A DNA stretch of 64,000 nucleotides, from positions 124,001 through 188,000 of the forward strand of contig JBLDXI010000038.1 of NCBI GenBank assembly GCA_047495785.1, given 5' to 3'. How positions within the stretch are numbered: the first letter of the stretch is position 1; the number at the start of each line of letters is the position of its first letter. The position numbers were made by a program, and so were the translations under genes. The notes under the pieces were generated by a model that saw nothing but the letters and a program-made list of their open reading frames with translations, had not been told where the DNA came from and did no database searches. This document shows, in pieces, positions 36,545-64,000 of this stretch. This DNA comes from Lepidodermella squamata (Eukaryota; Animalia; Gastrotricha).

Positions 36545-39500
36545 TTAGTCTTCAGCACTTTTCTTTGAGCCTCGCCTCTTATGGCGACCACGACCCCCGC
36601 CACCATCACCATGACCACCACCTCCAATAGCATTGAGCCGGTTTTGCTCGAGCGCTTTGCCTTTCGCCGAGCGGAAGAACTTTTTCTTGAGCTCCTTCGT
36701 GTTTTTGAGCCGCTTCTCTTCGATCGCCTGCGCCAACATTTCTTTCTTAGCCCGGTGGGCGTTGCGATCAGCTTTTTTCGTCTTCTCTCGCTCCGCATAT
36801 AACGCCTTCATTTGCGTCATAAATTTCGCAACTTCCTGCTCGTGCGGCTCAAGAACGACAGCCGGCCGAGCAGCTTCCACCTTATCGCGTTCTTTCTGGA
36901 TTTCTCTTGGTTTCAACTTGAACGGCAACTCTTTTTGTAAAGCGTTCGGAATTTGAAGCGGGGCAAAATACCGCTCCTCGCGCCGTTCTGCTTTTCGGTA
37001 GAGAGAGTCCTTTTTCAACGGGGCTTTCAGGCCACGTTCGGCCCGCAATTGTCCGACCGTTTTCATCCCCTGCCACGTGTCCTTCTGCCCTGGCGGTAGC
37101 AGCAAATTTGTAACTGGGGCACAATATTTTGGGACATCGATTTGATACCAAGTGCGTAGAAACACAATATCACTGAGCAACACTTTGTCCTCAAAAGTTG
37201 CGCGAAAACCGCCAGGGAATTCAGCAGACACTGCCTTTTTAATTTGTCCTCGAATTCCAGACACAGTTCTGATTGCGGCACCTTCGAATTTCGCAACTTC
37301 AAGCGGCGAAGAAAACATGTCCTGTTAAAAAATAAAGACTAAAAATAAGGCCCAAAATAGGTCTTAAAAACCTACCTTAACAAAGGCAGTTTTCTTGTAA
37401 ATTTTATACGGAGCACCGACCAATTTGAGCTTCTTCACAATGCGAATTGAAGCATCAGTTTCGACTATACTGCCAGTGGCAGCAATTCGGAATTCGGGCT
37501 AAAAATTATAGGATTGAAAAAATGCTGAAAATCTTTGAAATAGTTACATTTGAGCCGGAAATGTTTTGAACCGCCAAGATGCCAGTACCTTGAGGCGCGA
37601 TTGGGCCCCAGAAAGTCGCCCAGCAATGCGTATTTTCTGGCGTGTATTTGATCAATCGATTTCGCAGATTGTGGTCTTGAATTGTGTACAACGGAGTTGT
37701 TTGAAACCGCCTCCAGCCAACTGACACGATAATCGGATCGCGATTTTTCAAGATTTTCTTCCCCCAGCGATGCTTCTTGAAACGACACTGCACACACCCG
37801 ACAGCTTCTTCCGACGTTAACAGACCACCGAGGATAACTGGGTAGCGTGGGTCGAAATTTGTGACGAATTCGTGCGGAACTTGGATAAGTTCGATTCTCG
37901 CGTATGTGCCAGGTCGGAAACCTTCCAGCTTATTGCGCACATCTTCGGGCAGCGATGAAAATTCTTCACGGTTGATTTTCGACTGCTCCTCGATTCTCGC
38001 CTTCCAGTCTTCGTAGAATTTCATCTCAGGCCGCATTTTCTTAGGGTCCTCTTCCTCCTCTTCCTCGCCGTCTCCGCCGGTTTTCGAGTTCATCTTACCA
38101 CCGGTTGCGTCGAATTCAGCATCAAACTGCTTCTTTTTCTCCATTTTCTTGCGCAGATAATCGTCATCTGCATCAAGGCTAGCTGCAGGAGGCTGTTCAT
38201 CTACATCATCGGCATCGTAATCATCCTCATCTTCGTTACTTTCGTCATCATCGCCCCCGAAATCACTCCCATTTCCAGCGTCATCACCCAGTTGCTCTAG
38301 GTCGATAAACCCGTCTCCGAGAGAATGATCAGCACGGGCTTTTCTTGCCATGTCGTCAGCTTTCAGCCTTTCCTCGGCGTCTTCGTTTTCCTCCCAAGTT
38401 CCGGTGACAAATAAATTTCCCAGAGCATCATCGTCCACCTCAACGACGCCCGTGCCGCGATAACTCACCGCTGTGTCTTCCAGATTCAACGAATTGTAAA
38501 ATGTGTCCTCTTTCGCTCTGCTAGCGGCCGAAAGTTTGAACAAACCACCAATGTCGCCTTCACCGTCTTCGTCCTCTTCATCTGACTGCTTTTCGTCTTG
38601 GTCAACGGCCTTGCCATAGATGGCGGAATCCAATTTGTGAGCAGTTGATTGAAATTTGTAAAAATCACGATGAGCTTTCTCGAGTAACTCGTTTTTCGAG
38701 GGCAGCAGCTGATCTTCCTCGTCATCACCGTCCTCGTCGTCATCATCGAACATGATTTTCCGCCTTTGCTTACTAGTGCTGTCTTCATCGTTGTTAACCT
38801 GAAGATTCATACCAGGAATGAGAGAAATTTCCGGCATTTCATCCATAGGGGTTATTTTCAAATCAGGTTTTTCCTGCGCCTCTTGATTTTTGAATGAATG
38901 ACTGCCACCGAGTTCAATATAAACGGCATCTCGATCGTAGACAATCCCGGCAAAACCGGAGAACGGGGCGTATAGCAGTCGTTCTTTTTCATTGAGAGAT
39001 CGACGGAGTCTTTTCCCGCTCTTTTCTGCTTCCCGAACAGCTTGCGCAGTGGGACAAGGGTCTGGAAGCTGGTCGATTGACTGAACCTGGAAATCTCCGA
39101 CCCCGGGTATGTGGATGTGAGATTGCGGTCGTAAGTGAGTACCTCGAACGTAACCGTAGATTGAAACATGCCGGTCTACCTTCTTATTTTTGTCGATTTC
39201 AGCCGGGTCGGTGATGTCTTCGATGCGATCAGCAACTAAGTAAGGATGGTTCAGCCGCCAGGTGATCGGGCGGAATTTCATCACCGTGAGAAACCGGGCC
39301 AGATTTTTCACATCTCGCTGGAGGTATTCTTCATTTGAAAAACCGGACAAGTAGAAGAACTTAGCACCTTGAACGACTTCAGACCAGAACCGGTGTTTTA
39401 GCTTCTTTTTCGTATTCTTCATTTTCTTGTCATTTTTAAAAACATCAAGATGGTTCAGCACACCCATAATTTTAGGGAAGCCATGAACTTGTAAAATGTT

Positions 39501-40010
39501 CAAAAACTCAAATGTTTCCATTTCGAAGCCAAAACTGGCGTCAACAAGTAATAACGCGAGGTCCGCAATTTTCCCAATATCGATCATCGCACTCAAATCA
39601 TTGGGGCATTCAATGAAAGTAATACGACGCTTTTTCCCAGCAACCACAGTGATAGGGCCAGTGATATTCGCCATTTTCTGACGGGTGAAATGCCGGACGA
39701 AGTTGCGAATCAACGTACTCTTCCCGACTTTAGGCGGGCCAACGACTGCAACAACAAATGGCGCTGGTTCAACTTGGCTAAATGTTGAATCAACAACCGG
39801 AATGTGAACCTTTCGCTCGATTTTATCCGCAGCTCGATGCACCTCTCTGCGCACTTTATTAACCGAACGAATGGCAAAAGCCTTCGGGTTACGTTGTTTA
39901 GCAGTAAGCACATTAGTAATTCCATCGCCTTTACTCTTCTTATCCTTCTTCTCCGCCTTGCGACCCGACTGCCTTTTACGGTGGGCCTTTTTTACTTCAG
40001 TATCTGACAT
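36545..40010 (-). CDS. BMS1: Ribosome biogenesis GTPase BMS1
   Basis: GPPKVGKST, IADLALLLVDASFGFEMETFEFLN, LEGFRPGTYARIE, FEGAAIRTVSGIRGQIKK. Two short introns near 37500-37547 and 37322-37375. Confidence 0.97.
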
Positions 40011-42686: not shown

Positions 42687-45600
42687 ATGCTCGAACGCGA
42701 CCGCGTGCTTGTGGTACCTCCGGACGGTGGATGGGGTTGGATAGTCGTATTAGCCGCCTTTATGGTATGCGCTATTGTCGATGGCATAGCCATGAACGCA
42801 GCCACCATTTACGTCAACTTTCCATCCTTCATCCGCGCGATGAACGCTGAACACGCTAAACTACCCCCAGCACGATGCATCGCTTACCTGAATGGGTCAG
42901 AGACGGGATTCGACTATTTACCGTGTCCTATATTTAATACTTCTGCCGCGATCACCTTCGGACCAACATCGGTCGAAGGTAGCGCTGACAGTGAATCAGA
43001 ACCCACTTTCGAGCCAATGGCGAATTTCTTCATCGGAGCGACACTAATTTCGATTTACATGTTAATAGGTGAGCTCGTATTTCATATGCCTTAGTTACTA
43101 GGTTTCCTTCAGCACTGCGCAGTTAGGAAGTTGCTAAGTCGTTGCGTGGCATGATCATAACTCATCGAATTTTGAAGCGTGTGCTGAGGGCGTTGATGAT
43201 AATCATTACCGTCACATCGCCATCATGATCATATGTGCTATGCAGTTTCGATATTCATTTCTCCGATTTAGTCCATGCACATTACGCCTTTATTATGATC
43301 CAATAATATAAAGAGATGTGCGGTGGATCAGGATTTTCATCTATCATGCTACTCTCCTTCGTTCATTAATATAACGTTTTGATGTGTATGAGCTGAAGCA
43401 TTCGTGTGCTCAGTGTTTTCGCGTCCTACTTATTGTGTAGCAAAAAAAACGAAAAAACATCAATGCACACAGCTCTTTTACGTTATATTGTAAGTACTAC
43501 GCATAGCGTATATACAAAACGATAGCTCGTCACAATTATGTAAAAAAGGAAATGACAGCCTTGCCAGTATAAAAATACTGTACCATTTGCCGCAGTAGAA
43601 TTTACTGTCTATACTGTCGGTTTACCCTGGATTAATATCCATAAGAAAAAGAACGAAAGAATGATGAAAAAGGTTGATTATTGGATTTATTTGCATTCTC
43701 GTTTTTTCTACAGGTCCGTTCTCGGCCGCGCTCATCAACGTTTACGGTTCGAGACGAATTATTATTATTGGCTCCATTATCGCCGCAATCGGTTTCTCGC
43801 TGTCAGCTTTACTCATTGAGCACGAGCGAATCTTGCTGTTAACTCACGGTGTCGCAGGCGGTAAGACACACCTCCTTAATAAAGTAGAACGAATAAATCA
43901 TCCCATATTTGCTCATGGACAAAAAAATTGATGGAAATGCGTGAATTTTTTATGATCTAAATCGATGAGATAAGTTTATTTTTGACGTAATGGTAATTTG
44001 TCGTTATCTAGGCATTGGACTCGGCTTGATGAACGTCGGCGCTATCGTCTCTGTCGGTCTTTATTTTAACACGCGGCGTTCCCTGGCAATCGGTCTCGCC
44101 CTTTGCGGTTCTGGTGCTGGCATGACGATCGCACCCCTAGTTATCGAGCCGATTCTGACCGAACACGGACTTTACTACGCCTACGTTGTTTTGGCTTGTT
44201 TTTCGCTGCAGGGTGTGGTGGCCGGCGTTTTAGTGCGGCCATTGCGCCCAGTTTCATCGGATAAGAAACTACTCCATCGTCGCAAAGACGTTGTCGACCG
44301 CGTTCTGGAGTGGTCGAAAAATGTTAAACAAATTCGAGAGAGCGAGTCTTTAAACAGTCTCAACGACCCCGACAGCGTATTACGTCGCCGACAGGAGTTG
44401 ATGAAAACAAAGCAACAGCGCATTCTTAAACTGGAAATCGAGTCAGTACCGCAATCTGCTGTCGGTTCTCGGATGTCAATGGAAAATCAGCAAAGCTCTT
44501 ACCCGGCCGCATCTTCAGCGGCGCAAAACGAGGTAAAAAGAGGAACATGCTAATTTGCCCTAGTTTTGGTGCCATACTCAAAGAATGTGTCGATAAAAGC
44601 CGGATAAAAATAGCTACTCCACGTACTGGCTTCCGCTTGCGGACAGGAATTTCATTATTTGTCAGGGGAATACAAAAATTACGGGAATAGTATTAGAATA
44701 TTTTATGCGCGTCCGACTTTCGATTTTTTTCGTTCACACGAGCATTCATAGCAAGTCGCAGAAATAATCTATAAGCTAGATTCAACTCGAATTAAGCCGT
44801 GCGCGAAAATCGTCTACCGTCCCATTTTATTTCGTACGCTGCATAAGGTGTGATGAGCATTAATGTGTCTTAATTATACGGCATTTTCTTATCCGTACGA
44901 TAATAAGATGGTTCTTCAAAAGTGTGTTTTTTCGGAGTACTAAGGAAAATATGCCGCTCTCCGGTGTGAACCGTAAAGATATGAGGCTACTTGGCGCCAT
45001 CCCTATGCATATAATCAATAGCGTAGCCAAATATTGCGTGGACTACTTATTATTGAAAACCATTCAAGTTCTTAGGTGTTTGCTCGCTCCATCTGTATTT
45101 TTTCCAGTACTTGTTTGTGACGAAAATCGATGAGCTGATAAGTCATGTTGATGCTCGGAGACCCACTTCCGCGCTCGGTTTTTGAACATAGAAAATGTTC
45201 CCACCTCAGCGCTCATTAAATATTCATTAAACTAGAGAATTAGGTTAAACCACGCCATTGTGTTCATGTTACAAATAGCGAAAAAAAACAGCGGCGAAGC
45301 TCATCTCGAAAAGCGTGTCTTGAAGTAGTTGAACTGATATTTACAAATGCATAGCACTAGTTGAAAGCAGTTGATGTTAATAAAAAAAATTCATATAAGT
45401 ACTTGGATGAAAGACTAATTGTCTGTTTATCTTTCAGGCGTTGCTGTCACCATCGGTGAGAATAGATCCGGTGTTCTGTCAAGTGTTCGGCTCAGATCTG
45501 CTTTCCCCATTCCCACGACCAAACTCGTCGATCTCGGCATCTCCAGACCCTGGAGTGGGAGGTGCCTCATTTACACCCTCTCCTCCCCCTCAATTCGCCA

Positions 45601-48235
45601 ACTCCTCAGCGTTGATGAGCACATCGTCGGCCCTCGCGGCTGCCGGCATTACTTTCTTGCCAGAGCCGGGCAGCAACCCAGCGCCGCCGGTTTTCTTCCT
45701 CACGCTGCCGATGCCCGCTGCGATCCCCGCAACGGGTATCCAACTAAAGCGCGACGAACTGCCCTATTCTTTCACACGACCAGGTACATGCGTGTGCTCA
45801 GTGTTGCTCGACGGGGGCATGCTCGTCGCTTCGAATCTCCTGACGGCGGCAGCCAAATCTTGCCCAGAGTTGAACGAGAAGCGGCCGCTTTACGCAACGA
45901 CTGAGTTGCGATTGCGCCGCCGTCCAATAACTAGTAACGACGGGAAAGAAGAGGAAAAATCACCAGCAGCCAGCCAGTGTGCTGAAAATCATGAAAAAAT
46001 AAAAGCCGTGCAGAGTACGCCGCAATCGACGCGCCAACAGAGACGGAGGCGGCAGCGTTCATCTGAGAACCGGTTCGTGCCTTCAACGGGGCCGGTTTTC
46101 GAGGAAAGCCACTTCGGTCCGTTTATAGAAAATGAGGAAAGCGAGTCGCTGCTGCCTGTCGTCTCAATATCTCAAGCTCCGTTGCAGCCGCGGCGAATGA
46201 TCCGGCGGCGAACCGGGGCGATATTAGCCGAAGAAGCGGCTGATGCTCAAATAAATGATGACCCTATTTTGTTGGCTAACAATAATAATAACAATAATAA
46301 TGATAATCAGTTCAATAATGTTAATCCCGGACTGGCTCCGGCCAATGACGATGGTCTCGGGCGGGATTCGGGCATTTCTAACTCATCGTCCGGGCAGTCG
46401 GATACGTCGGACAAAGCCTCGCAGAAACAGTTGGCGTTAGACGACAGCACGGTGCTTCAAATGCTACAATTGCCAGCCTCTGCTGCTACGGCTGAGCATG
46501 AGCAGCTGCTGATCGAGGGCGACGACGAAGACGAGGGTGACGAGGATGAACCAGTCGGTGAGGAGCAGACCCAGTCGACCAAATCGTATATAGAAAGAAG
46601 GCGCCGGAGACGGCAGATGGTGTTGCAGCGGCGGGACAATGTCGCGGCATCGCTAGAACCGGCGCCTGATGAACTGCACACGAACGTGTTCAAGCACCTG
46701 CTGTCAGTCCTGGAGGCGATTCTCGATATTAGTTTGCTCAAAGATATCCGCTTCTGGGTCATTCTGTTCGGAAATCTCTTGTTGATGGTCACATTTCTGT
46801 TGCTGCCGCTCAATGCCGACGTCGTGAAAACGATTCGAGCCCTTGACTCGCTGCATTCACAGCATATGGCCGCTCAAATGTCTACCCCACCATCCGCACC
46901 CAACCCAGCCGCGTCTTACGCTGCCATGCCTGCGATGCCGATGACAGGCAACGACAGCATCAGCGATAGCAGCGGCGACTTCTCACTGACTGGCGACTCG
47001 GAACTGGATCTCGCCGAGCCCGCCGAGCCGATTCCGTGGACGCCTGACGACGACGATTTCGGACCTAGTGAGCTCTACGAACCGATGCCGCACATGTATG
47101 CCATACTACTGTCCGTTTGCGGCTGCACTCAGACCCTGGTGCGCGCCGTTGCCGGCTTCTTTGCTGACTACCCTCGCGTCGACGCAACCATAATGGTTAG
47201 TCTTTTTTGTAATATTTTTCAGTTTAATTTATCTGTCTGCACCTTCATTCGTCGTTGACGGGAATTGTCTTCGTGACTCATCATATTATATTTTCAGTTT
47301 TCGCGTAAAATAAGCTCGGTGAGCTTAGGATTACAGAGGATGACGCCCTAATTTTACGGATTGGCATGTACCACTTAGTACGCCGGCGCCTTCCTGCGGC
47401 TAGACGTCGATCGATACTTTGCGTTACGTAGTTCGAGCGCAGGCTAATACTACTGTCTGAGGTCTATAGTGATCTTCACGCTCAGGGGATTCAAAGTGGG
47501 ACGCAGCTAAATAACATAATTATAAAATAAAATAAAATAAGACGGGTAAGCATTTCGTAAAATGTTCTAGTATTCATTCGGTTAATAGATGCATTTCACC
47601 CGTGGTACTTTTTAATTGTAGAATAGAAAATTCATTATGTATTGGTGAAAATTAAGAATTAATGAATAAGCAAATGTAGTAAAAATCAGCTCACTGAAAG
47701 TGTTTAAAATTGAATAATGTGATAACGTTTATTTCATTTTTTCAACCAGGTTGCTGTTGCCATGGCGATTGGCTCAGTCGCATTCTTGCTGCTCGGCCTC
47801 GAGTCAATATTGATGATGGGTATCGGCGTGTTTTTCGCCCTCCTCGTCGTCGTGTCGGCGTGCTCCGGTGTCTTTTTCGCTCTTGCCACAACCGTAATTG
47901 TAGACACATTCGGCGTCGACCGACTCACATCGTGTTTCGGCATGATCACTATGATCCGTGGTCTGGCACCCTACGTCACCATCGGTTTCATGTTATCCGT
48001 GTCGCAGCTGATCGAAAGCCAACAGCTTGACAACTCTAACGACCTACTACCCTTCCGCATAGCCTGTATCCTTTGCGCTGCACTCGTTTTCATCTGCGCT
48101 ATCCTGCACGCCCTGCTCTACTGGCTGCGAAAACAGCCGTCTAAGTCGTTAGCAGTTCAGGCAGAAACAACTGAGGCTGATGCGAATCTCGACCCAATCG
48201 CCCTTCAACAACTGACTACACATCAAATTGAGTAG
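42687..48235 (+). CDS. SLC16 / monocarboxylate transporter family MFS protein with very long loops
   Basis: PPDGGWGWIVV signature, YFNTRRSLAIGLALCGSGAG, 12 predicted TMs. Exons ~42687-43068, 43714-43861, 44012-44532, 45439-47194 and 47750-48235. Confidence 0.9.
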
Positions 48236-49322
48236 TAGCAGTATTTGTTTAATTTGAAGCTTCTCTCCATTTGTTTTATTGCTTACATGAATCCACCTCT
48301 TCTCACTCCTTTACTGGTAAAAAATTGTACAGCATCGCTGTTTACAATAATAATTCGGGTACACAATAGCTTACTTCGGCCATGATAGCCCACCTTGACA
48401 GCAAAAGTTGTGTGTAATTTCAATACTTAAAAATTATTTACAAACTCTAACCTCCTACTACTTCTAAAGAGATGGAACTGGTAAAAACAAGATGGTCTAT
48501 TTACACAAAAACGGGCGGACACGTACTTTTCATCACGCATTTATTGTTTTGCTGTATGTATATATACATATTATAGTATTATACAACACTGTCGTACTGT
48601 TCATATTTTCCTATTTTAAACTTATAATAATCGTGCTCTACACAGAAAGACATCGGGCGAGCAGCTCGATTTTCTTATAATACTTTGATATTCTAGATAC
48701 AAAGAAGGAAATGATAAATGGCGATGGTTGTGCGTGTGTATAAGTCTGTTATTTATAGCTGGAATGTTTGTTTCGTGGGAATTGATGACACATTCGTATT
48801 TCCCTTTCCATAAGAAATTTAACTGCGGTTTACTTGCGTCAGTTGCACCAATTATCAACTGTGAAATTGTGTCGCAAAAATATGAAGTGAACACAAAAGA
48901 GCACCTTCTGATGTGAACTTGTAAACTATGATTGCCACACTTGTGATGGATGGCTGCTTTATCTTGATTGTTTCGATACGGTCGTTACCGTGTTTTCGCT
49001 ATGTAATTTAACTCGAGTTTATATCTTCTCTCCCGTCTCGATGTCTTTTTCCAAGGCGGCATCGAACCATATTGTTCGGGGATTACACGATATTTTTGAA
49101 TTGAGGAAAGAGTGGAATCGGCAAATTTTTGTGATTTCGATGTTTTAGCGCGTGGTGAAGCAAAAAAATTGAGTGAAAGAAAACAACAAAATAAAAATCT
49201 GAAAACATTACATCGCGTTATCATTCACCAACATTTCGTGAGGCAACGCCTAGGTAACAGGCGTGTTAATTGCTGCTTCTATTTATGTCTCGCTCTCCAA
49301 TGATGTGGTATTCGTGAATTTG

Positions 49323-49364
49323 TCTCAGTTACAGGCACTCTCAGTTACAGGCTCTAGTTACAAG
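49323..49364. repeat. Short tandem repeat (ctcagttacaggc)x2.5
   Basis: tctcagttacaggcac tctcagttacaggc tctagttacaagc. Confidence 0.7.
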
Positions 49365-52300
49365 CTTTTGCAAATTGGGCGGTGATATTCTTCTTCTCGA
49401 AGGCAGTGTCGCGAGACAAATGAAAGCAGTTTAACAGCAGTTATGGAGCTAGACTTATTTAGTAACGCATTCGTAAGTAAAATCTTGGATTCTAAAATTC
49501 TGAATCACGTTGGATTCTATGATTATTCACCAAGGAAGACTGTTTAATAACAACAAAATTGGACACCGTTCAGATGCCTTACACAAGGCTTTAGTCTGAT
49601 GCATCTGCCGTTGGAAGCACTACAGTAAAATGTGATAACTTCGGTCATTGATCTATGAACATGGAAGACGGCAGTGGAAACTCATTGATTTGAGGACCAT
49701 TTAGATGGTAAGAAGGATAATCTGGTTTGGACTATTTAGGTTTCTCACTAACTTGGCCGTTTGTCATCAAATAAATTCGTCGGCACATCATTTACGTGCG
49801 TCGCATGGATGTGCATCATTCTACAGATCCGGGTTTGTATCTTTTGTATTTTTGTGGGCTCACCATCGATACCTAGCTCACTCATCAGTCATGAACCCTT
49901 GTCATCTTCGATTTTTTATGGAACAAAGTGGCCCTAATATCGTACTACATGCAGATACCCTATCCTCCATCCCGTATTGTGCGTATGAAAATGTATGCAA
50001 GTTGCTTAACCTACACATAATGAGAGGAATGAGGGAGCCGAAGCAGGAACGACCGAACCGAGAACTAAGGGACCCAGCAAGGAAAAAAAGAAAAAATGGG
50101 CAGGTCCCCGGACTCCTCCGGGGACTGCTGTTAGTCGGAAGACGAGAGTTTGTCCAGGACGCATGCGGCAGACTTCCGTCGATTTCCTTGTTAATCTCTT
50201 GCAAATCTTTTTAACTTTTTTGAATACTTATTCTAATCAATTTTATTTCTATGAATATTCAAATTTATGCAAATTAGGTCTCGCCTAATTTAGAGGAGAG
50301 ACGTCTTAGTGCTCGTGCTGGGTTTACCCTCATCGACAGATTTTGTGTAGAGTGAGAGGCGAAAACTTCGACGAGAGCAGCATATTGTTACACGGTTGTC
50401 GCGCAGTCCTGTTTGAAAACTAAGGAAGCCTTGCGGAGTGGAGTATTAACTGCGCCACACGAGAATAACTTATTGAGGGAGGGTTCTGTTTCAAAAGGAG
50501 GTAGAACAACAAAGCCGCGTGAGATCTACCCCACTCCGCTCGCCCTGCTCGCTCCGTCTCGCAGTCACAATGTGAGAAGAGAAGCAGCGGAGTATTAACT
50601 GCGCCACTGGCGAGACGGTAGGCTCATAACATCACTCCATCGGTATCAGTGAGCGGTGCATAATCACACTGACAACTGATATGCAAAGAACGGTTGAGAC
50701 AATTTCCGTTTCAAAATGAGCTAGACGAACGAAGCCGCGACATTGTGGGATGTCTTTCAATGATTTAGTCAGCTGAGTATTTCACTGAAAATCACTGAAG
50801 CCTGCGTCATTGCAGTTAACAAATGCGATTGCATATAGCTAAATTGACTCTGATTGCGCTTCTGATTCACATACGATACTTTTCCAATGCCCCCCCTCGC
50901 CTTCAATTCAACATTAGTAGGCACCAACATACGATGATCAGAGCAGAACGCCGCGTCACTGATGTGTGTTTTATCACTGTAACACTTATTCACACCGTTC
51001 GATAGTAGTCGATCAAATGTCCTGTGTCGAAGACTTCTGATTTTCACTGATCATCGTTTCATTCGGTCAACTGAGAGTAAATATACTGCTGTCACACGAC
51101 GCCTGCAATGCCATTAAAATGTGATTGTAGACTACAATTCCCGCTTCTCTTGTGCGTATGATTCGCAGATGACACACTCTCAACATCCACACTTTTTCTA
51201 GGTCAAAAGCACGGTTGCCGTTGTTGAGAACAATGTTCAACATTGGTTACATTGTTTATTTTTGTTCAACATCCGAACTCCGAACACATGAATTATAGGT
51301 TTCAGATCATCTGATTTATAGATAGCTAAAGATTGCTGCTCCTTGAGGAATCTCCGGAGTCATTCTAGACTTATTTACAGAATTATGTACTCTTTTCTCA
51401 ATGATAATCACGCTGTGTTATCTTTGAGTTAAAATTAATAACTGATCAGTGATCAGTGATCAATGACATGTGAGTTTCGTATCTAATAAAGAGCAAGTAA
51501 TATCGGAAGAAAGCTTCTCGACGACATAGCTAACCTCTATTCAATACCTTATCATCAGTAATAGTTTAGTTTTGTATTCGAAAAACTATTATCAGAAGAA
51601 CGCTTTTATATGAGAGAGCTAATTCCTCTAAGGGTACGCATTCCGAGATCTAACCTTTACGCATCTAGAGAGATCAGAAGCATAATGCTGAGAGATGAAG
51701 CTACCCTGAGAGGTCTTCGCAAATGGAATAATATTGACATCAGCCATCAGCCACAATCCAATTAGTTTGTGTTAATTTTATTCCACTTGAATAATCTTGA
51801 ACTTCTAGATCTTCTCAGAAATTTACCGGCTGAATTCCTTGGAGATTAATATATCGAGCGCAATTGTGCTTCCAATTTGGATTTTGAGTTTGCATATTTT
51901 TCGTTAGAAGAGTGATATAACCGAGAGAAATTCGGAGTTCAGAATCGTCAATAAGCCCAGAAGTGTAGATGCTTATCATTCATCATTATCCGCGTTGAAA
52001 GATCCTTACCTGAGCATTTGAGCTCAACCACAGAAAGGCACCATAAAAAGCACAGAGAGACATAAGTTTTGTTCTCTATGCTCTCAAGTTGCTCGTTTGC
52101 TAAATGAGTGTTGGCTTTGACTCACTGGTATAACTTCTTTAAAACGAAGGACAAATGCACTCGCTAACTCACAGTTGGAGTTAAAGTTTTGATTCGATTA
52201 TTACAGATGGCCACTGCGGTTACGTAAATGTCAGCGCTCGTGCGAGTTCGAAGTTATCAATTCAATTCAGCATGACATCAACGTGGTCTGTACTAAAACT

Positions 52301-53473
52301 AAGATATTTTAGCTTGACGGCGCAGATAAATCATACCTCTAGAGACTAATTGACATACGCAACTGAGCACAATAAAACTGAATGAAGAATTCCGATGAGA
52401 GCTTGTAAAACTGAGTTGTGGGAACAGCTGATCGAACGCGCCGATACTCGCTGGTGTCATGCAGTGAACACATTGAAAACGCATCGTCACGCTGACTGCA
52501 TGCTTTGATCGTCTAGCTAGGGCTGGGTGACTTACTCAATGCCACGAACATCTGATCGCTGCTCTACTCGAACTCTTGACTCTTTTAAATGGGAGATCTG
52601 ATATTTCAAGCTGGCCGCTGGCTTTTCTAGCCGCTGGCTCTTACTAGACCTTACCTATATAAAACATGAAACTCCTTTTTTCCGCAAGACAACGCAAGAC
52701 AATGGGACCTGCCCATTACGCCACGCTGCAAGCGCAGCGCAGCGGCGTAAGAAAATTAACACATAAATAAATGCGGCAAAGACCATGTGTCAATTTACAA
52801 GAAACATTGTAATAATATTGCTTAGTAGTCTTTAGCAATCAATAATAATTTTTTTATTTATTATATATTTTTCACGGTCGATTGAAAAAATCGCGGGCCG
52901 CCGCAAACTCAGAGCAGGCGTATCTGGTTGCCAAATCCTCGTTCGCTCGGGGCTACTGGGGATCGACTCGCAATATTCTTACTTGCGTAAAGCAAATGTG
53001 CCCTATAAAAAAGAACTCGGTGTTGCAATGGTGTAACATGGACTCTAGAGGTGGAAAACTGTAGAGAGCCGGATGACGGAAGACGGATGATCATCATTTT
53101 TGTGAGACCTTGGAACTTATCTGTAGCTTCAGGTAAGAGCCCCCAACTCACAACTCAATATTTCAGCTTGAGATGTACATTTTCTCTGCATATTCTATCC
53201 TCGCCACTCTTCTCTTTAGTATTCAAAATGGCAAATAGTGTAGACTTTCTCAGGCAACTGTTAAAACAGGGACAATTATTGGGGACAGTTGAAGAACGTA
53301 ACGTAACGGTTGGCTTTATCAAAAACTGATGAATCGTATAATAATTTACTCATTTTTCTTGTTTAAACTATGATGCCCGTAAGTGATCGATTGATCAGTG
53401 CAGACTGCAGCCATAGCTGAATTCACTTATCTTTTATGCTTAGATTATTATTGAAAATTGATCTTGGAACGTG

Positions 53474-56400
53474 ATGAAGTTCGGAGAAGCTTTGAATGCG
53501 CAACTAACATCTGAATGGCGCTCTCAGTACTTTCGATACGACGTAAGTTTTGGCAGTAAAAATGAGCATGCCTGACAATTGCTACTTTTCATCTCTTAGG
53601 AAGGCAAGCAGATGTTGCAAAACTTCAAGGAAAGCATGCCACTACCAGATGGTTTGCATTTATTTGTAAACTTGAATAGCATATATTCTAATTTATATTC
53701 CTGCAGATGCAAATCCCCAGGATCTTGAAGGACTCGTGTCGGACTTTGAGGCGAAATTCTTCGAGTTCGCGGAGAAAGAACTTCGTAAAATCAACATCTT
53801 CTTCCTAGGTTAATTATTGTTGCTATCGGCGATCTGTTTCATAGTTTCATTTATTCACAGAAAAACTTAATGAGGCCAAGCGAAAGCTATCTAAACTCAG
53901 CTCTGATCTCGAGGATTATTTGAGATTTCAGCAGCAAAAGCAGTCGAAGAAGCGAGGTGAACCTGTTCCTGGGACTTTCAATGACACCAAGGCGCTAAAA
54001 TCGTTGAGCATTCATGATTTCCGTCTTGCCTACAGCGAGTACTATTTGAGCTTAACGCTGCTTCAAAATTTCCAACAGCTCAATTTAACTGCCTTCCGTA
54101 AAATTTTGAAGAAACACGACAAAATGCTGTCGACAACTCGGGGTGCCAAATGGCGTCAGGACGTTGTTCTAGTGTCCGAGTTTGCGACATCGAAAGCAGT
54201 TGACGAACTAGTCGCTGAGGTGGAACGTGATGTCACTCAAAAAATCGAGAGCGGAGATCACAAAAAGGCGATGAAGCGTCTCCGCGTTCCGCCTCTAGGC
54301 CAGCCACATCATTCGCCATGGACTGTGTTCCGTATCGGAATGTGGTGTGGTCTGCTAGTTCTGTTTTTATTGATCATCGTTGCCATAATTCCGTGGTCGG
54401 ATTGCAAGCCAGAATCCCGTGGATGCTGGTTGCAAAATGATACTAGGAATGAATCAGAGTACATTTTTACGGATGCACTTGCTGCCAGTCCAGCTCAATT
54501 CTGGGAAATCACAATTCGCCTTTACCGTGGAATTTTCCTGTTTGCACTTATGATTTTCTTACTCGGCGTTAACATTCACGGCTGGCGGGCGAGTGGAGTC
54601 AACCACGTGCTAATTTTCGAGCTGGATCCTCGTGACCACCTATCGTCGCTTCACCTCATCGAAGCCGGTATCGCTTTGCTTGTCTTCTGCTGTGCCTCAC
54701 TCACCCTCTGGCTGCTGCAATTTTTCGTCTCTTATACCTTCGCAATCGATGTGAATGCTATACGATATTTCTCTTTCGCGTTCATGCTTCTGCTAGTCGT
54801 TTTTCTCATCAATCCGATTCCAGTGTTCATGTACAAAAGCCGAGTTTGGCTGCTCAAAGTCTTGGTAAATTCATTTGTTAAAACTGTGGTATGCTTGTTT
54901 ACAGTGAGATTTTTTTACAGTTCCGAATCTTCACCGCACCGTTTCATGCTGTTAGATTTCCGGATTTCTGGCTCGCCGACCAGTTCACATCTTTAGTGCC
55001 TGTATTTCAAGATTTTCTTTTCATTGTGTGCTCATGCGCAGTGACATTTGATCCCACGCGAGTTGAGAGCGTTTGCGATTGGGAACTGTTCGCTTGGAAA
55101 AGCATGATAGGTTGCGTTCCGGCGTGGTTTCGTTTTGCGCAATGTCTCCGACGTTATTACGACTCGGGTAAAAAACACCCGCATCTGACCAATGCCGGAA
55201 AGTATTCGACAACTTTTTTCGTCATTCTTTTCCGAAGTCTGCATAACGCATGGGAAGACGGTCGATTGGGCCCGAACGCTCCAGCAATATTGGCCTTCGA
55301 GACGAATGGTGTTGAGAATGCTACCACCGAGTACAATTTGTCGACTACTTCTCAGCCCTACGCTACTGCCACAACCCCATTGCACCATCTTCACGCAAAC
55401 TATAGCGTTGCAAATCCGTTTTTATACTGCTGGATTATTGCCGGTACCATTTCTACGATCTACACTTACGTTTGGGACGTGAAAATGGATTGGGGCCTTT
55501 TTGACACAAACGCAGGTCTGATAACCGGACATTTTTGAAAATTGGTGTAAAAATAATATTTTTATATTATAGGAGAAAACAGATTTTTGCGTGAGCATAT
55601 TGTATTCCGTTACAAATGGTACTACTATCTCGCCATTGTTCTCGACCTGATTCTGCGTCTTTCTTGGACGTTGACTGTTGCTGATATTCAAATCAGTGAC
55701 CAGGCATACATCACTGATATATTTATCACGTCGCTGACCTTTGTTGAAATGTTCCGTCGATTTGTTTGGAACTTTTTCCGACTAGAGAACGAGCACGTCA
55801 ACAACGCCGGCGAGTTCAGAGCTGTCCGTGACATCTCGATCAAACCAATTTTGAATGAAGACATCAAGGCTGTTGAGCGAATGATGGCCGAGGAAGACGG
55901 TGCTAATTCCGTCCGGCATGAACGTCGAGCTTCATGCCCGACGATGGAATCAGGCACGAAAAATAACAAATTGTAAGTTTTATTTTTTGATATTCTGTGA
56001 CTAGTTTTATGGAATTATGGGGAAATTCTAATATGAAATTTAACATATTATATCTGATAGTCCGGCTGAAAAAAGAAAGTAAGCTTCGACATAGAAATTA
56101 CTCAGAATTAGAAATGTTATCCTCGATTCCTTAATATCGATGAATCCAACTAATATCCTCCACTTCGTCTAACAAAATCTCAATTTTTCTGTTTTTAATT
56201 CAATTTGTTGTTTACAGTGATATCGGAGCAGGCTTCCACAATGCGTTTACCATGACCAGTGCTGCTGCAGCTCCTTTCTTTCGGAAATTTACCAATTTGT
56301 ACCGAGCCCGTGACCGAACTCCTGCTGCTGAGAGTTCTCGCGACCGGCTCGATGCGCCGCAGTCATGCATGCGTGAAGACGAGTCGAGCAGTCAAACGTC

Positions 56401-56617
56401 GACAATCAACCGACGAGCCCTTGTTGCGGAGGATGTGGAAAGCGTGCAGGTAATCACGCCTCTGCAAGTCCCTCGCGCTTTCCACCGCCCAGTCAGCATG
56501 CTGGCGTCTCGTCCGCGTTACGATCGACAAGAAAGTGCACAGGTACACGAGTCGTTTCGGCGCCCTGTTGCCGAGCAAATCCGAACGATTGTCGACCGCG
56601 ATTCAGACGAGGACTAG
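53474..56617 (+). CDS. XPR1: SPX-EXS phosphate exporter XPR1/SYG1
   Basis: MKFGEAL...[24 protein letters not shown] (SPX), [71 protein letters not shown]. Multiple short introns. Confidence 0.96.
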
Positions 56618-56887
56618 CTCTTCTTCTGTTTTTATTTACAAATTTGTCGATTTTTACTCAAGTTTTTTCAAAATTATTATTTTTCGGCATGCCTCTTTTT
56701 ACCACCATGCCGCTCATGCACTAGCCACTTCTGAAGTAGCTCAGTCATCGTGTATTGCTGTTACTCTTTAACTTGTATCAAACCAGTTATATTTACTCGT
56801 TGTTTTCTTACGGCTGAGCTCAAGCAAAGAATAGTGAACAAATTATAAATGAATTGCCTTGTATTTTTTAGGTTTTTTATTTAAAAT

Positions 56888-58263
56888 ATGACGGGATTCC
56901 GAGTTCGATTGTACCTATCCCGAAGTGTTACGCGATTAGCCTCCGATGCTCTGCAGCAAGATGGCTTTTGGTACTATGTTGATCGGAGCAAAATCTCGAC
57001 GATTTCTCAGCTATTCGCCGATGTTTGCAAACATCTGAATCTGAGTTCGAATCTGCAGAAATCGATGCAATGTTACCTCGACGGGCTTTACGTTTTACCA
57101 TCATCGCCTGTGGATGTTCTCGAAAAGGATGACTCGATAAAAATTAAGGTGGCAAAAAACGTTATCAGCAATAACCTCCAAATAAAACATGTGGTGAATG
57201 GATTGACCGCAGCTCAGAATGGCCCTCTAAACGGCGGCGTGATAGCCGCCCCTGTTAAAAACGTCGAAGCTGAGAAAGACTCATCTTCCTCTTCAGAGGA
57301 ATCGGAGGAAAACGACGATGATTATGATAATGATGAGCCTGATAATGGCTTGTCACTAGGAGTTGGACCCAGTTCGAAGAAGAAACGCAGGCGGCGGAAA
57401 AAGAAACCGGCTATGCGTGAAGTTAGAACAACCCTCGGTCAGTGTCTGGCTCAGCTTCGAAATTCCGAAAACACCGCTCCAGAGAAGCCACCAAAGCAAA
57501 AGAGCCCATCAGTGCCACCGCCGTTTAAGCCTACCTTGAAACAGTCGCAACAGCAGCAATACCAGCCTGCTTCGATACCTGCGAAGAGACGTCATATCAG
57601 ATTCGATGAAGACGAGGATCAAGAGGAAGAAGAAATGGAGGTTCAGCAGCCATCATTTCCAGTTTTGTCGAAACAATTCTGCCAGAACGAAAAGCAGCGC
57701 AATGTTTCCACCGTTTTTCAATTATCGAAACAAAATGGCAGTAAAAAGCAGGCAGAGTCTGACGATGACTCGAGCAGTGAGGAAGAGGAGAATCGGCAGC
57801 TGATGGATGCTGATGAGGATGGATTAGCGAGTCCGCCGAATTTCGGCGATCCATGGCGCGAGCTCAACGAAAAATTATCTGCTGCGAGCAAGTCGGCGAA
57901 AAGTAAATCTGGTCAGGCTAAGCAGAGCAATGAAAACGTTGATTCTTTGCCGGCTGCAACCTTTCCTCCGAAAATTGGGGCGAGAATTTCCTTTAAGATG
58001 CTTGAGTTATCAGAAAAATTCAGCCCGGAAATAAGTGCGAGAAAAACGGGTCTGGTCAAATCATTCGATCAAGAAACCGGCGTTGTCACTCTTGAAATGG
58101 TCGAAGGCACTATTTGCGTTCAGGACGAAGATGGTAACAACGTTCCACAACCAGTAAGTCTATGAGTTATGATTAGTTATGATAGAGAATTTCTCTTTTT
58201 TTTGCATAGAACCCCAGTATCAGCTGGTCATCGCTAGTCGATCCGCGTGAAGTTGCCAAATAA
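56888..58263 (+). CDS. COIL: Coilin
   Basis: N-terminal RVRL...W......ISTISQL...YLDG.YV.P...LEKDDSIKIK domain; KKKRRRRKK NLS; KRRHIRF; C-terminal Tudor-like PKIGARISFKMLEL...SPEIS...WSSLVDPR, completed by last exon 58210-58263. Confidence 0.82.
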
Positions 58264-58400
58264 CGGATTATTTTGCTCATTCTAGAACGATCTTTTATTT
58301 TCAATTTTTTCCGATGTTGAAATGTAGCGAGTTTCATCAATTCTAATCTCAAATATTTATGTTCATAGTTTTGTTGGGTTTTAATTTTGTTGATACCAAA

Positions 58401-59594
58401 ATGACGGTGGAAGACGCAGCGGTGCCCCAGACCACGTTCAAATCGCCTTTTGTCGAAAAGAGCGTACCTGTCGATATTGATATTGGTTGCATGCTAGCCA
58501 TGGACACAGCCGATGTCATAGAGGTGAAACAAGGCCAAGATCGCGAAGAATTGATCCGCAATCTGTCCCGAGACAACGCGCAATTACTCATTAATAAACT
58601 GTGGAATCTTCCTACAGAGCGAGTCGACTCAATTGTTGTTGCTACGGTAAGTACGAATGAGGCTAATTTAAGGCGGATTTTTAATGTTCATTTCTCACAG
58701 CTGCCACCACGCACCACAGTTTTACCCCGTGAGAAACCTGTTCCGAAACCGAAAGCGCCTTCAAAATGGGAGGAATATAAGAAAAGCCGTGGTCTTCAGA
58801 CTCGTAAACGAGATAAAATGGTGTGGGATGCTGCTGCTAAAGAATTCCGTCCTCGTTGGGGTTACAAGCGAGCTAACGACGACACAGAAGCTAATTGGGC
58901 CGTCGAACTGCCCGCTAATGCTGACCTCAGTGAGGATCCATTTGAGAAACGGCAAAACGCAAAGCGTGAACGTGTCGCCAAAAACGAACTGCAGCGACTT
59001 CGTAATGTTGCTCGATCGGAGAAGCTCACCATTCCATACCAGCCTGCTCAGATGCAAACGCCTGACCATTTGACGAAAGCGTTTCACGAAGTCACCAAAT
59101 CAACGGCGTCTCTTGGAAAATTCATGGAGAAGGTTCGCGATGAACCGCGAGACAAGCACTCTGGTAAGAAGCAAAAATTCGAATCGAACCTAGTAGATTC
59201 CAAGGTTGAACGAGAGCGACAAATGCGAATTCTGGCTGAAATCTCGTCGAAAAATCCGATTTTGAATGCTGACAAAGCAGCCCGTCGTCAAATTAGCCAA
59301 GAAAATAAAGAGAAGCAACGCTCCAAGGGCGAAAAACCCGGCAAGAAGGGCAAAAAGGGAGGTCGCACATGGTTACCTGCTGATAAATATGCGAAGGTCC
59401 AGAAGAAAGAGCAAGTGCGCGAGGCAAAGCGAGAGGCGAAAGGCCGGCCTACCAAGGCGTCGAAGTTTGAGTCGAAAATCGGGCCTGGCAAGAAGCTGCC
59501 CGGCGGTAAAGGTCTTGCAAAGGGAAAATCTGGTAAAAATGCTGCTGGAAAGGTCGCGAACAAGACGCGGGCCATGCTCAAACGCTCAAAATAA
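58401..59594 (+). CDS. RRS1: Ribosome biogenesis regulatory protein RRS1
   Basis: SRDNAQLLINKLWNLP, LPREKPVPKPK...KWE, RPRWGYKR, ERVAKNELQRLRN, STASLGKF. 54-nt intron 58647-58700. Confidence 0.95.
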   Translation: MTVEDAAVPQTTFKSPFVEKSVPVDIDIGCMLAMDTADVIEVKQGQDREELIRNLSRDNAQLLINKLWNLPTERVDSIVVATVSTNEANLRRIFNVHFSQLPPRTTVLPREKPVPKPKAPSKWEEYKKSRGLQTRKRDKMVWDAAAKEFRPRWGYKRANDDTEANWAVELPANADLSEDPFEKRQNAKRERVAKNELQRLRNVARSEKLTIPYQPAQMQTPDHLTKAFHEVTKSTASLGKFMEKVRDEPRDKHSGKKQKFESNLVDSKVERERQMRILAEISSKNPILNADKAARRQISQENKEKQRSKGEKPGKKGKKGGRTWLPADKYAKVQKKEQVREAKREAKGRPTKASKFESKIGPGKKLPGGKGLAKGKSGKNAAGKVANKTRAMLKRSK

Positions 59595-59712
59595 TAGTGA
59601 AATATCACAAGCTGTTATGATTGATAGCTATAATATCAATAAATGGGTGCAAGTTTTTTTGAAAACTCTATTTTTTATTTGTTTTCTCTAGAATAATAAT
59701 TTCATAACAAAT

Positions 59713-60543
59713 ATGTCACTGCGCAGTATTACGAATATATGCCGGTGTCATTTGAGGACAATTTCAGTATTGGCTACCCGGCGGAATCAGCCTGCGATGT
59801 TGAGCACGATCGCTAGTCAGCCTAAAATGTATGTAAATCAGTTTTCTACCACGACTAGCGTCAATTTGGCTAAGAAAAGCGGTGCAAACCGTGGTTCCAA
59901 GCACAAAACTCATGAATTGAGTGAAAATGAGTTGAATGCGTTCTTTTCCGTCGAAGAAATGACCCAGGAAATAAATAAGACAATCGATCATTTGGGTCAA
60001 ACATACGCAACGCAACTAGCTTTACGATCGAATGTTTCGTCATTCGAACACCTACCCGTTGTCGGCGCTTCGGGGCGATATATATTGTCGAATATAGCGC
60101 AAATCACGCAGAAACCAAATATGGTAATAATCGATTGTTCGACAAAACCGGAAATAGTCGGAGATGTCAAAACCGCCATTGAAAAGTCTGGCATGAATGT
60201 CAACCCTCAGCAAGACGGAACTTCGATATTCGTACCCCTGCCAAAGGTAACGAAAGAACACCGCGAGGCGATGGTGAAAGCCGCGAAAACGCACGCGGAC
60301 AAGGTCAAAGAAAAGTTGCGACAGGTTGGTAGCAAATATGCCCGAACTTTCAAGAAAAATGCCGCTGGTCGCGGTGAAGATTTTGTTAAAAGCGGTGAAG
60401 AAACGGTAAATTTCATATTCTTCTGTTCAATATTTGGTTACCTAATTATTTTTCAGGTCCAAAAAATAGTAAAGCGCTTTGAGCAGCAAGTCGATACCCT
60501 GATGACCTCGAAGCAAAAAGAATTATCCGGTGCCGAAAAATGA
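59713..60543 (+). CDS. MRRF: Mitochondrial ribosome recycling factor
   Basis: Basic transit-peptide-like N-terminus; IEKSGMNVNPQQDGTSIFVPLPKVTKEHRE; SKQKEL C-terminus. 51-nt intron 60406-60456. Confidence 0.9.
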   Translation: MSLRSITNICRCHLRTISVLATRRNQPAMLSTIASQPKMYVNQFSTTTSVNLAKKSGANRGSKHKTHELSENELNAFFSVEEMTQEINKTIDHLGQTYATQLALRSNVSSFEHLPVVGASGRYILSNIAQITQKPNMVIIDCSTKPEIVGDVKTAIEKSGMNVNPQQDGTSIFVPLPKVTKEHREAMVKAAKTHADKVKEKLRQVGSKYARTFKKNAAGRGEDFVKSGEETVNFIFFCSIFGYLIIFQVQKIVKRFEQQVDTLMTSKQKELSGAEK

Positions 60544-60674
60544 ATTGAATACGAAATTTTATGATGTTATAAACCAAGTTATAAAAATGTTTGATTTTCA
60601 AATAGAAAGCTGTATTGTTATGACAGTAATTTAGCGGCGCGTTGTGATTCGTGTGGGGCGGAGTCGTCGGTAAA

Positions 60675-63600
60675 ATGTTTAACGGTAACTTCGGAAATTT
60701 CTTCATCGGAAACGAAGACAGCGAAGATGCAAATGATGCGTCCTATAAAAATGAAGTCAGCGAGCTCATCGAAGCGGCGATGCGAAAGCGGACGTACTTT
60801 TCGAACCGCAAGTACTACGCCACGCTGCGATCGCCAGGTTGCGTACGAGAAGGATTGCTATACGACGTCGAACAGCAACTTGCTCGTTATTCGAAAGAGA
60901 GAATGCGAACAATGAATGGCCTTCTACTTCTCTGCCTGAATTTGGGAGTTGACCCTCCAGATGTGCGGAAACCACCGGACAGCTCTAAAGTATTTACCTG
61001 GATAGGTTAGCCGTCGCATGCGATTTTCTGTGTTTATTTCACTTATTTTTATTACAGATACGACTAACAAAGATGCACGTCGATCGCAAGAGTCGATCGG
61101 AAACCAGCTTCAAGGGTTGTATTCGCAAATGCAACAGCGAGCTCGTTTCCGGCTCCTCGTCGACCCGCACCCGGTCAGCGTGCAAACTTCGTGCCAAAGC
61201 GCGAGAAGAGCGGCCGGGCGGACGGAACGCGTTCTGTTCCATTACAACGGACACGGCGTGCCCTTGCCAACTCTCAACGAAGAAATATGGGTTTTCAACG
61301 AGAAAATGACGAAATACATGCCGTTGGCCCTGAGAGACCTCCAGCAATGGCTGGGCCATCCGACGCTATACGTTTTCGACGGCAACTGCTCCGGCCTTGT
61401 CCTCAGCTCTTTCTACCACCAGTGGCTGAAAGACCCGACGACTGGCCTGGTGCTACCCGACGATTTGAAAGACCCCACTAAACTGGCATCGGCCGAGTAT
61501 CGGAAACCATTGTCAGACCTTGTTTCCGAATGCGTTGTTCTATGCGCGTGTGGCCATGACGAACTGCTACCGATGGATTCCCGTCTTCCAACCGATTTAT
61601 TCACGTGTTGCCTGGTGACACCGATCAAAGCATCGCTGCTGTGGTACGCTCTTCGAACTGAATCGAACCGCCTATTACCGGCACAGTTCGAATTGAACCC
61701 GAGTGAAGTCGTGAAAGATGACTTTATACCCGGTCTTGTTACCGAACGCCGAACCCCGTTCGGTGAGTTGCACTGGGTGTTGACAGCTATAACAGACACC
61801 ATAGCGTGGGACTCGCTGCCTCGAGGTTTATTCCACGGCCTATTCCGCCATGATTTAGTTCTCTCTGCGTTGTTGCGTCATTTTTTGGTAGCCGAGCGTA
61901 TTTTACACAAATTTGACTGCCACCCTCGAACCTTCCCACCCCTGCCTCGAATGCACAACCATCCGCTGTGGGAGGTGTGGGACTACGCACTCGATGCCTG
62001 TGTTCAGCAACTACCCGCTGTCAAGGCCGGCCAGCCATACAAACCACTCACGTTCTTCTTAGACAGCTTGAACGCGTTCGAGCATTGGCTCAGGTGCCAC
62101 AATGGCGAGCCAGCTTTTGCCCTCCAATTGCCGATTTTGCTACAAGTCATGTTGGTGCAGGCTCATCGCGAACGCGCCCTTCAATTGTTGTGTGAATTTG
62201 TTGACCTTGGCACATGGGCCGTGTGCCAAGCAATCACCGTCGGCCTGTTGCCATACATCCACCGGTTGGTGACTAACAACGAAGTAACACTAGCTGATCG
62301 ACTCGTTTTTGTATGGGCGAAAATTGTTTCCATCGACAAGTCATCTCAAATGGAGCTTATCAAATGCCAAACTTTCAAGTATTTTGGAGCGGTACGTTTT
62401 ATTAGTTTTAAGATGGATTCATTTTATCGATTTTTTTCTGTAAATAGCTGCTCAGTCCCGATGTTGCTGTTTCTGGCCTTCCATCGGCGCCTTCAACTCG
62501 CGCTCTTGCCGCCTTTGTCCTAACTGCCGTCATGGTTCGATTCGCCAAGTTGCAATGCGAACTCAGCACTTCAAACCAGTCTCCGGGACCCAATGGGGAT
62601 AGCGCAGCTGAAAATGCGCCGCCTGCTGCCGCTGCTGCAGCGTCATCGTCAACCGGCCATTCTTCAACGGCGAAGGCTGATACTCGGGGCTTGCTGACCA
62701 ACACCATGCTACAAGCCGCTGAACAAGGTTTTGTCTGTTTCGAACAAGACGCTGATTTGAGGCAGTGGTTATGCCTCTGCCTATCAGCCTTGTGGCAGTC
62801 TGATGACGAGGCGAAAGAGGCGGGCAGACGGCGCTTCCTATGTGACACTATGCTGATGGGCCACAATCCGACGAAACATCGACCGGCTGTTCGAGCAGCT
62901 TTGGTCCGGGCCCTAGCCGCGTATCTATCCCCCTCAGCAGCGACGACTCCAATGGCGAGGACGGCGCTAGATTCAATGCGCCAGCTTGCTATTTCGATGA
63001 ATAAATTCCTGGGCGATTCAAGCCCATTGGTGCGGCTTGAATTGGTAGCGTCGCTTGCTTCAGTCGCTCAGCAATTCGAGTTTTTCGTAAAATCGAAAGA
63101 ACAGTCCGACCAGCCTGGTGGCATGGCGAAACGAGGCTCGACTGTCAATTTGCTGTCATCGGCTTCTCATAGCAACCTGCAGAACTTGGCAACGTCTCCG
63201 CCACAACGTTCAAGCCTGCTACCAGGTATGATGACTCAACAAAGCCAACCGGGCGGGGCGGTGTCGCATTTTGATGCGTTTTGCGCAACAATGATGCGTT
63301 ACATCTCTTTCCTGGCGAGTGATCCACACCCTGAGGTGCATACAGCCGCGAATCATCTGCTGAAAATCATCGAAATGAAGCAAAGCGACCCGCAGGTTAG
63401 CTACATTTTGTGTACAAAATTATTCCTATCTCGATTTATTCAGGCCATGGTACAAGCTCGTACGCTGCGATACCAGTTTGCGAGGCGCGACTCGAATTCT
63501 CTGGCTGATGACCAGCAAGAACCGCCCGGGGGTGGTGGTCTGGTTATGAGCCCGCCAGAACAGCGGACGACAATAGGCCAGTTGGCTACCGACACGAACC

Positions 63601-64000
63601 GCCCGCTGTTCGAAACAGGTCTGCTCGACCAGGCGTTCTCGCAGATTCAGCAACCCCTCATGTCGAATAAGACCGACGAGCAAATGTTGGCGGCTGCCGA
63701 AATAAATCAGAGGCGGAGGCGTAATTTTTCGTCTTTCGGCGGCGGCGAGTTGACATTTCGCAGTGGTGTATCTGTCGTTCAGCAGTACACGGCCAATGTG
63801 AGTCGGTATACGCGAGACCAGCTGATTTCGCATATAGCGCTGCATCCTAATTTGGACCTGATGATCGCTGCAACTGCGGAATCGGTTATTCTGATCGATC
63901 TTCTGAATTCGAATGTCGTATCATCGATAAATTTGATCACGTCAGCTCAGAAGGCGCAGTTCAGGGCCGGGGCCCCGTCGGCCTCTCCGGTTGTGCATAC
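60675..64000 (+). CDS. RPTOR: Regulatory-associated protein of mTOR (Raptor), 3'-truncated by the window
   Basis: KERMRT..LLLCLNLGVDPPDV, ERVLFHYNGHGVP, LPTDLFTCCLVTPIK, TPFGELHWVLTAITDTIAW, HEAT-region LRQWLCLCL, DSSPLVRLE, DPHPEV. The frame stays open to the window end. Confidence 0.95.

Follow-up and report, generated by a model that had tools for sequence, protein, structure and literature searches.

A run of five genes on one strand

The 64,000-nucleotide (nt) stretch of Lepidodermella squamata DNA analysed here (contig JBLDXI010000038.1, positions 124,001–188,000 of the forward strand; hereafter the window) carries, all on its + strand, the genes XPR1, coilin, RRS1, MRRF and Raptor, in this order and with only 270, 137, 118 and 131 nt, respectively, between each stop codon and the next ATG. 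An earlier note, made from the letters alone, had read this run as an operon in which spliced-leader (SL) trans-splicing supplies the 5′ ends of the downstream messages, and had named the AG dinucleotides that would serve as acceptors. Pfam searches, reading of the sequence and introns seen in RNA return exactly the same five co-oriented genes and the same four spacers, and the AGs (56870–71, 58367–68, 59690–91, 60625–26 and 60633–34), a branch-like CTAAT and an AATAAA signal all lie where the note had placed them.

Gene identities were assigned by Pfam search of the open reading frames (ORFs) of the window at curated cut-offs, with spliced models searched exon by exon; reading frames were checked on exons joined by script, and starts and stops were placed by reading the DNA together with the introns seen in RNA contigs. 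The RNA evidence consists of assembled contigs of public runs, not raw reads, and three runs, here called X1, X2 and X3, contain window DNA. In X2 the entire stretch is present in one near-identical contig, and this run is probably the genome source. Contigs of X1 and X3 lack five GT..AG introns: those at 55973–56217 (the last intron of XPR1), 58647–58700 (RRS1) and 61006–61057 (the first intron of Raptor) are joined out in X1, and those at 58154–58209 (coilin) and 60406–60456 (MRRF) in both X1 and X3. The missing introns identify both X1 and X3 as RNA, and X1 contigs in addition carry SMART cDNA primer letters.

The XPR1 coding region, for an SPX-EXS phosphate exporter, extends from 53474 to 56617 (stop codon 56615–17) and begins with the SPX-type start MKFGEAL; the Pfam domains fall on ORFs 53920–54996 and 55587–55976 (SPX, 46.7 bits; EXS, 72–76 bits), and the 3′ untranslated region (UTR) reaches at least 56826, where an X1 contig ends. 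Coilin (56888–58263; stop codon 58261–63) is recognized by its C-terminal Tudor_Coilin domain (40.6 bits, above the cut-off), with an N-terminal Coilin_N match of 27.2 bits that lies under its cut-off of 32.9. RRS1 (58401–59594; stop codon 59592–94) matches Pfam RRS1 with an E-value of 5e-49 (166.6 bits). The gene for the mitochondrial ribosome recycling factor, MRRF (59713–60543; stop codon 60541–43), matches Pfam RRF (E-value 5e-26, 92 bits), and its product has an N-terminal extension of ~95 residues that is typical of the mitochondrial form. Raptor begins with the ATG at 60675, leaves the window at 64000, and is identified by Raptor_N (E-value 1e-36, 126 bits); a 4452-nt X1 contig represents it. 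The window as a whole is compact animal DNA with a G+C content of ~44% and introns of 51–56 nt. The 54-nt intron of RRS1 keeps the reading frame and contains no stop codon, and its retention would add 18 residues to an otherwise unbroken protein.

Leader junctions and message 3′ ends

At two of the predicted acceptors, RNA contigs are joined to letters that are foreign to the genome. The RRS1 contig of X1 matches the genome from 58367 onward, after nine foreign letters, CGAATTCTA. In the MRRF contig of the same run, 22 foreign letters, CTGCGAATTTGATTTGTGTCTA, stand ahead of a genomic match that starts at 59690, and this is also where the MRRF contig of X3, which derives from a separate study, begins. 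Both junctions coincide with the last AG before the respective ATG (58367–68 for RRS1; 59690–91 for MRRF, 21 nt before its ATG). Since the genomic match includes the AG, each leader must itself end in ...CTAAG, and the 3′ end of the second, RRS1-type leader is expected to read ...CGAATTCTAAG directly before the GT in its gene. The prediction of a non-genomic leader thus holds at RRS1 and MRRF; it finds no support at 60625 or 60633, the positions proposed for Raptor, whose X1 contig starts at 60664 and is leaderless.

Neither tail is encoded in the window. The MRRF tail has no match in its 64 kb even when up to three mismatches are allowed, and the nine-letter RRS1 tail followed by AG has only two one-mismatch matches there, at chance level and on the opposite strand. 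Splicing of the two AGs in cis to upstream donors, which the earlier note had named as the outcome that would speak against trans-splicing, is therefore not borne out, and a nearby 5′ exon as the origin of the leader is ruled out within the 56 kb upstream. Each spacer contains 4–11 AGs, so that an AG before an ATG is not unusual by itself; what goes beyond chance is that foreign letters are found exactly at two named AGs, and that the spacers of the run are far shorter, by 20–40 times, than the 5.2-kb stretch upstream of XPR1.

The 3′ ends of the upstream messages lie close to these acceptors. Coilin mRNA extends to at least 58342, where an X3 contig ends, which leaves 24 nt to the RRS1 acceptor AG; this intercistronic stretch (58343–58368 with the acceptor) starts with the branch-like CTAAT (58343–47), and its acceptor is the one used in the X1 contig. 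For RRS1, the poly(A) signal AATAAA is at 59638–43 and the mRNA ends ~20 nt past it at 59660–65 (X3 contig end 59660, X1 contig end 59665), 24–29 nt before the MRRF acceptor (59690–59691). With 3′ ends ~24 nt before the acceptors, a promoter, first exon and donor cannot fit between coilin, RRS1 and MRRF, in agreement with the remark in the earlier note that there is no evident space for them. The MRRF poly(A) site is at 60582–60587, as an X3 contig ends at 60587 and continues with 20 A. Two further acceptors are proposed from the letters: for coilin the AG at 56870–56871, which is the last before the ATG and is preceded by 15 nt with 80% pyrimidines, and for XPR1 a pyrimidine-rich AG at 53442–53443, 30 nt before the ATG. 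The remainder of the MRRF–Raptor spacer past the poly(A) site (60588–60674) holds candidate AGs at 60604, 60608, 60625, 60633 and 60662, and then a G+C-rich stretch of 30 nt.

Loose contig ends of X1 bracket 59580–59665: a run of 23 T precedes 59580, and 59665 is followed by AAA and the SMART primer. These ends could represent a short antisense RNA or a cDNA artefact.

A diverged relative and candidate genes for the leader

The best RRS1 relative in the protein collection is 65% identical, and the next ones are from molluscs (45–48%). A 4.7-kb contig of this relative from an environmental assembly (L001) carries coilin, RRS1, MRRF and Raptor in the same order on one strand, with spacers of ~104, ~148 and ~106 nt (coilin–RRS1, RRS1–MRRF and MRRF–Raptor, respectively), and exon-wise protein identities to the window of 40% for coilin, 66% for RRS1, 79% for MRRF and 61–81% for Raptor. 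The layout of the RRS1–MRRF spacer recurs as well: AATAAA is followed after ~38 nt by a pyrimidine-rich AG, with ~22 nt from there to the ATG, where the window has 21 nt. At the DNA level coding sequence alone aligns (68–75% identity) and the spacers do not, hence the arrangement of the genes, with its order, strand, tight packing and spacer layout, has lasted longer than the sequence itself. The relative departs from the window in its intron positions (L001:1242–1303, 2811–2854 and 3800): it has extra introns in RRS1 and MRRF and is without the first Raptor intron. The retained order and spacing fit a constraint that joint transcription might impose, and plain retained synteny could also account for the kept order. 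This conservation is that of one relative, to which the fetched loci L002 and L005 also belong; word searches with RRS1 and with Raptor exon 2 found this single close relative only, and a word search with coilin exon 1 gave no match, being swamped by low-complexity words.

A scan of public metagenome contigs with the 22 letters of the longer, MRRF tail matched two contigs, L003 and L004. In L004, all 24 of the 24 leader letters are present and are directly followed by a GTATGT donor. The putative SL RNA gene at L004:715–812 (− strand) consists of the leader and GTATGTAT, then two hairpins separated by a short single-stranded stretch, and finally a T-rich end; it is situated ~140 nt upstream of a 5S ribosomal RNA (rRNA) gene and beside the 3′ end of the large-subunit rRNA. 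L003 contains an rDNA spacer with a 5S rRNA gene, in which the 3′ half of the leader is repeated four times in tandem, each copy followed by GTATGTAT. Beside these copies (together at 2444–2690, − strand) is another complete SL-like gene (L003:2590–2690, − strand), whose leader is a different one that starts with AACCATC and ends with CAG before GTATGTAT. Judged from the letters, the layout of L004 and L003 is the anatomy of SL RNA genes. A Sm-site-like motif, UUUGAU(A)UUU, is conserved in both SL-like genes, exonic rather than intronic in that it is part of the leader exon; the L004 gene shows no clear Sm site of the form RAU(3-6)GR between its hairpins, and no Rfam SL family matches the candidate genes. 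We infer that these environmental contigs belong to this animal or to a close relative. In the window itself, an Rfam scan at gathering thresholds gave no match over its whole length, and thus no SL RNA gene, nor were any tRNA genes found.

An operon reading, its alternatives and its setting

The leader is seen joined to RRS1 and MRRF, and message 3′ ends, introns and the conserved gene order are likewise observed; we infer a joint primary transcript that starts at a single promoter and includes probably XPR1 and possibly Raptor. We consider it likely that coilin, RRS1 and MRRF constitute an operon resolved by SL trans-splicing, with XPR1 probably as its first gene and Raptor possibly as its last. 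These three genes combine a leader on the downstream genes with almost no intercistronic space, which are the working criteria for operons in tunicates and nematodes (PMC7986045). In the proposed mechanism, transcription by RNA polymerase II would begin within the 5.2 kb that precede XPR1 and continue through the genes of the run; cleavage and polyadenylation would end each upstream message, and ~24 nt further on the leader would be spliced to the next message at a branch site, pyrimidine tract and AG, giving that message a capped 5′ end 21–32 nt before its ATG. The leader, ~30 nt long and ending in CTAAG, would be donated by a small SL RNA encoded elsewhere beside 5S rRNA genes. With so little room between the two sites, one U-rich tract probably acts twice, in cleavage of the upstream message as the downstream element and in trans-splicing as the pyrimidine tract. 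The further idea of the earlier note is speculative, namely a growth operon that couples phosphate export, Cajal bodies, ribosome biogenesis, mitochondrial translation and TORC1.

Several observations weigh against the operon. No contig of X1 or X3 bridges two genes (58343–58366, 59666–59689 and 60588–60663 are uncovered), although contigs could not prove a joint transcript in any case. X1 contigs leave the 5′ end of coilin (56827–56964) uncovered. The two leader tails differ, with CGAATTCTA+AG at RRS1 and ...TTTGTGTCTA+AG at MRRF; for the former no DNA source was found in the window or the fetched loci, the metagenome scan having used the longer tail only, and the SL-RNA-like gene for the latter is known from environmental contigs and not from this genome's own sequence. 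An alternative is that each gene has its own promoter in the 3′ part of the preceding gene, that trans-splicing merely trims a short outron, and that the tight packing reflects genome compaction rather than operons; the absence of bridging RNA speaks for it. SL trans-splicing serves single genes in other animals too (general knowledge; PMC7986045 stresses such contamination), and X1 contig depths vary up to nine-fold between the genes, even if such depths cannot rank them. We regard separate promoters as unlikely, however: at two junctions the next acceptor follows the 3′ end of the upstream message after only ~24 nt, order and close spacing are kept in the relative although the spacers no longer align, and the working criteria applied to Ciona and Oikopleura (less than 60–100 nt from gene to gene; PMC7986045) class the present genes as operons. 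Still less can be said for the view that there is no trans-splicing here and that cDNA chimeras or assembly errors gave rise to the foreign letters. Chimeric ends do occur in X1 (the SMART primer at 59665 and at 60522, and the T-run at 59580), and one of the tails is only nine letters long and recurs nowhere in the window or the fetched loci; yet both junctions fall exactly at the last AG before the ATG, as predicted from sequence alone, CTA ends both tails before the AG, the 24-letter tail is found again on unrelated public contigs, next to 5S rRNA genes and with a consensus donor after it, and the X3 contig starts at the same base, 59690. An artefact of this kind is highly improbable.

The 3′ boundary of the operon is less firm, and there is a real, if minor, chance that it stops at MRRF, with Raptor transcribed from a separate promoter within the 131-nt spacer and its message starting near 60664 with an ordinary 5′ end that is not spliced. 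The X1 contig of Raptor begins at that position without foreign letters, TATAAA boxes are found at 60568 and 60580, and the 30 nt upstream of the Raptor ATG are G+C-rich, unlike the other acceptor regions, with AGs in the spacer that have weak pyrimidine tracts; moreover, the distance from the MRRF poly(A) site to the start of the Raptor contig is 76 nt, three times that at the other junctions. These features, too, count against the operon as far as it would include Raptor. On the other hand, the end of a contig is not the end of an RNA, 76 nt is very short for a promoter plus a 5′ UTR, and in the relative MRRF and Raptor are adjacent, with a spacer of ~106 nt and pyrimidine-rich AGs 2 and 24 nt upstream of the Raptor ATG. 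A more far-reaching version of the operon reading, which we put forward only tentatively, is that all five genes of the run belong to a single conserved transcription unit of Gastrotricha, with a fixed cleavage and trans-splicing module of ~24 nt that uses one U-rich tract, and with different leader classes on the downstream genes. If true, this would represent leader-class specialization within one operon, of a kind not described in tunicates or flatworms.

The operons of the tunicates Oikopleura dioica and Ciona resemble the present locus in being same-strand runs of unrelated housekeeping genes, and in their leaders that end in AG and their short 5′ UTRs. The distance from poly(A) site to acceptor is very short in both, with medians of ~31–33 nt in Oikopleura and ~1 nt in Ciona (PMC7986045), compared with ~24 nt here. 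The phylum and the leader sequence differ; joint transcription at this locus is probable, and two different tails occur on two downstream genes where tunicates use a single leader. In SL2-type operons of Caenorhabditis elegans, which are likewise rich in growth and housekeeping genes, the downstream gene also receives its leader shortly after 3′ end formation of the upstream gene. The SL RNA genes for SL1 of C. elegans are linked to 5S rRNA genes, as is the candidate described above. With respect to the SL2 specialization, two tails were seen on two downstream genes, and no first-gene or single-gene junction was seen beside them. Nematode spacing is ~100–110 nt, with a U-rich element between the two sites (PMC7986045 and general knowledge), in contrast to ~24 nt here.

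In flatworms (Schistosoma, Macrostomum and Echinococcus), too, many housekeeping messages receive short leaders, and some genes form operon-like pairs. Flatworm leaders are ~35 nt long and end in AUG, whereas the leader considered here is ~30 nt long and ends in CTAAG; no sequence similarity between them was detected. A literature search returned no paper that links gastrotrichs with spliced leaders or trans-splicing, and no match to the leader string, and the words operon, trans-splicing and spliced leader do not occur in the L. squamata genome paper. Systems of this kind are known, and it is the phylum, Gastrotricha, that would be new. Among animals, SL trans-splicing and operons have a scattered distribution over the phyla, for which repeated origin and inheritance are both under debate; a well-documented gastrotrich operon would add a phylum to this list, and one that is usually placed beside the flatworms (PMC6468455). 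The locus combines two successive junctions that share a 24-nt spacing, two tails, and an order of four genes that is kept in a diverged relative, and so offers a convenient test case for the coupling of 3′ end formation and trans-splicing. For annotation it carries a warning, in that gene finders may fuse or truncate such genes.

Upstream of the run, the 5.2-kb stretch (48236–53441) is A+T-rich, the ORFs tested in it have no Pfam match, and it is likely to be the promoter region of the cluster. It is bounded on its other side by a gene for a transporter of the MFS family on the + strand (42.6–48.2 kb, end at 48235). Between the MFS-domain parts of this gene there is an ORF of ~600 residues (45441–47258), mostly of low complexity and without a Pfam match. 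Further upstream, at 37506–40010, an intact gene for the ribosome-biogenesis GTPase BMS1 is encoded on the − strand, so that a ribosome-assembly gene lies near the cluster in the opposite orientation.

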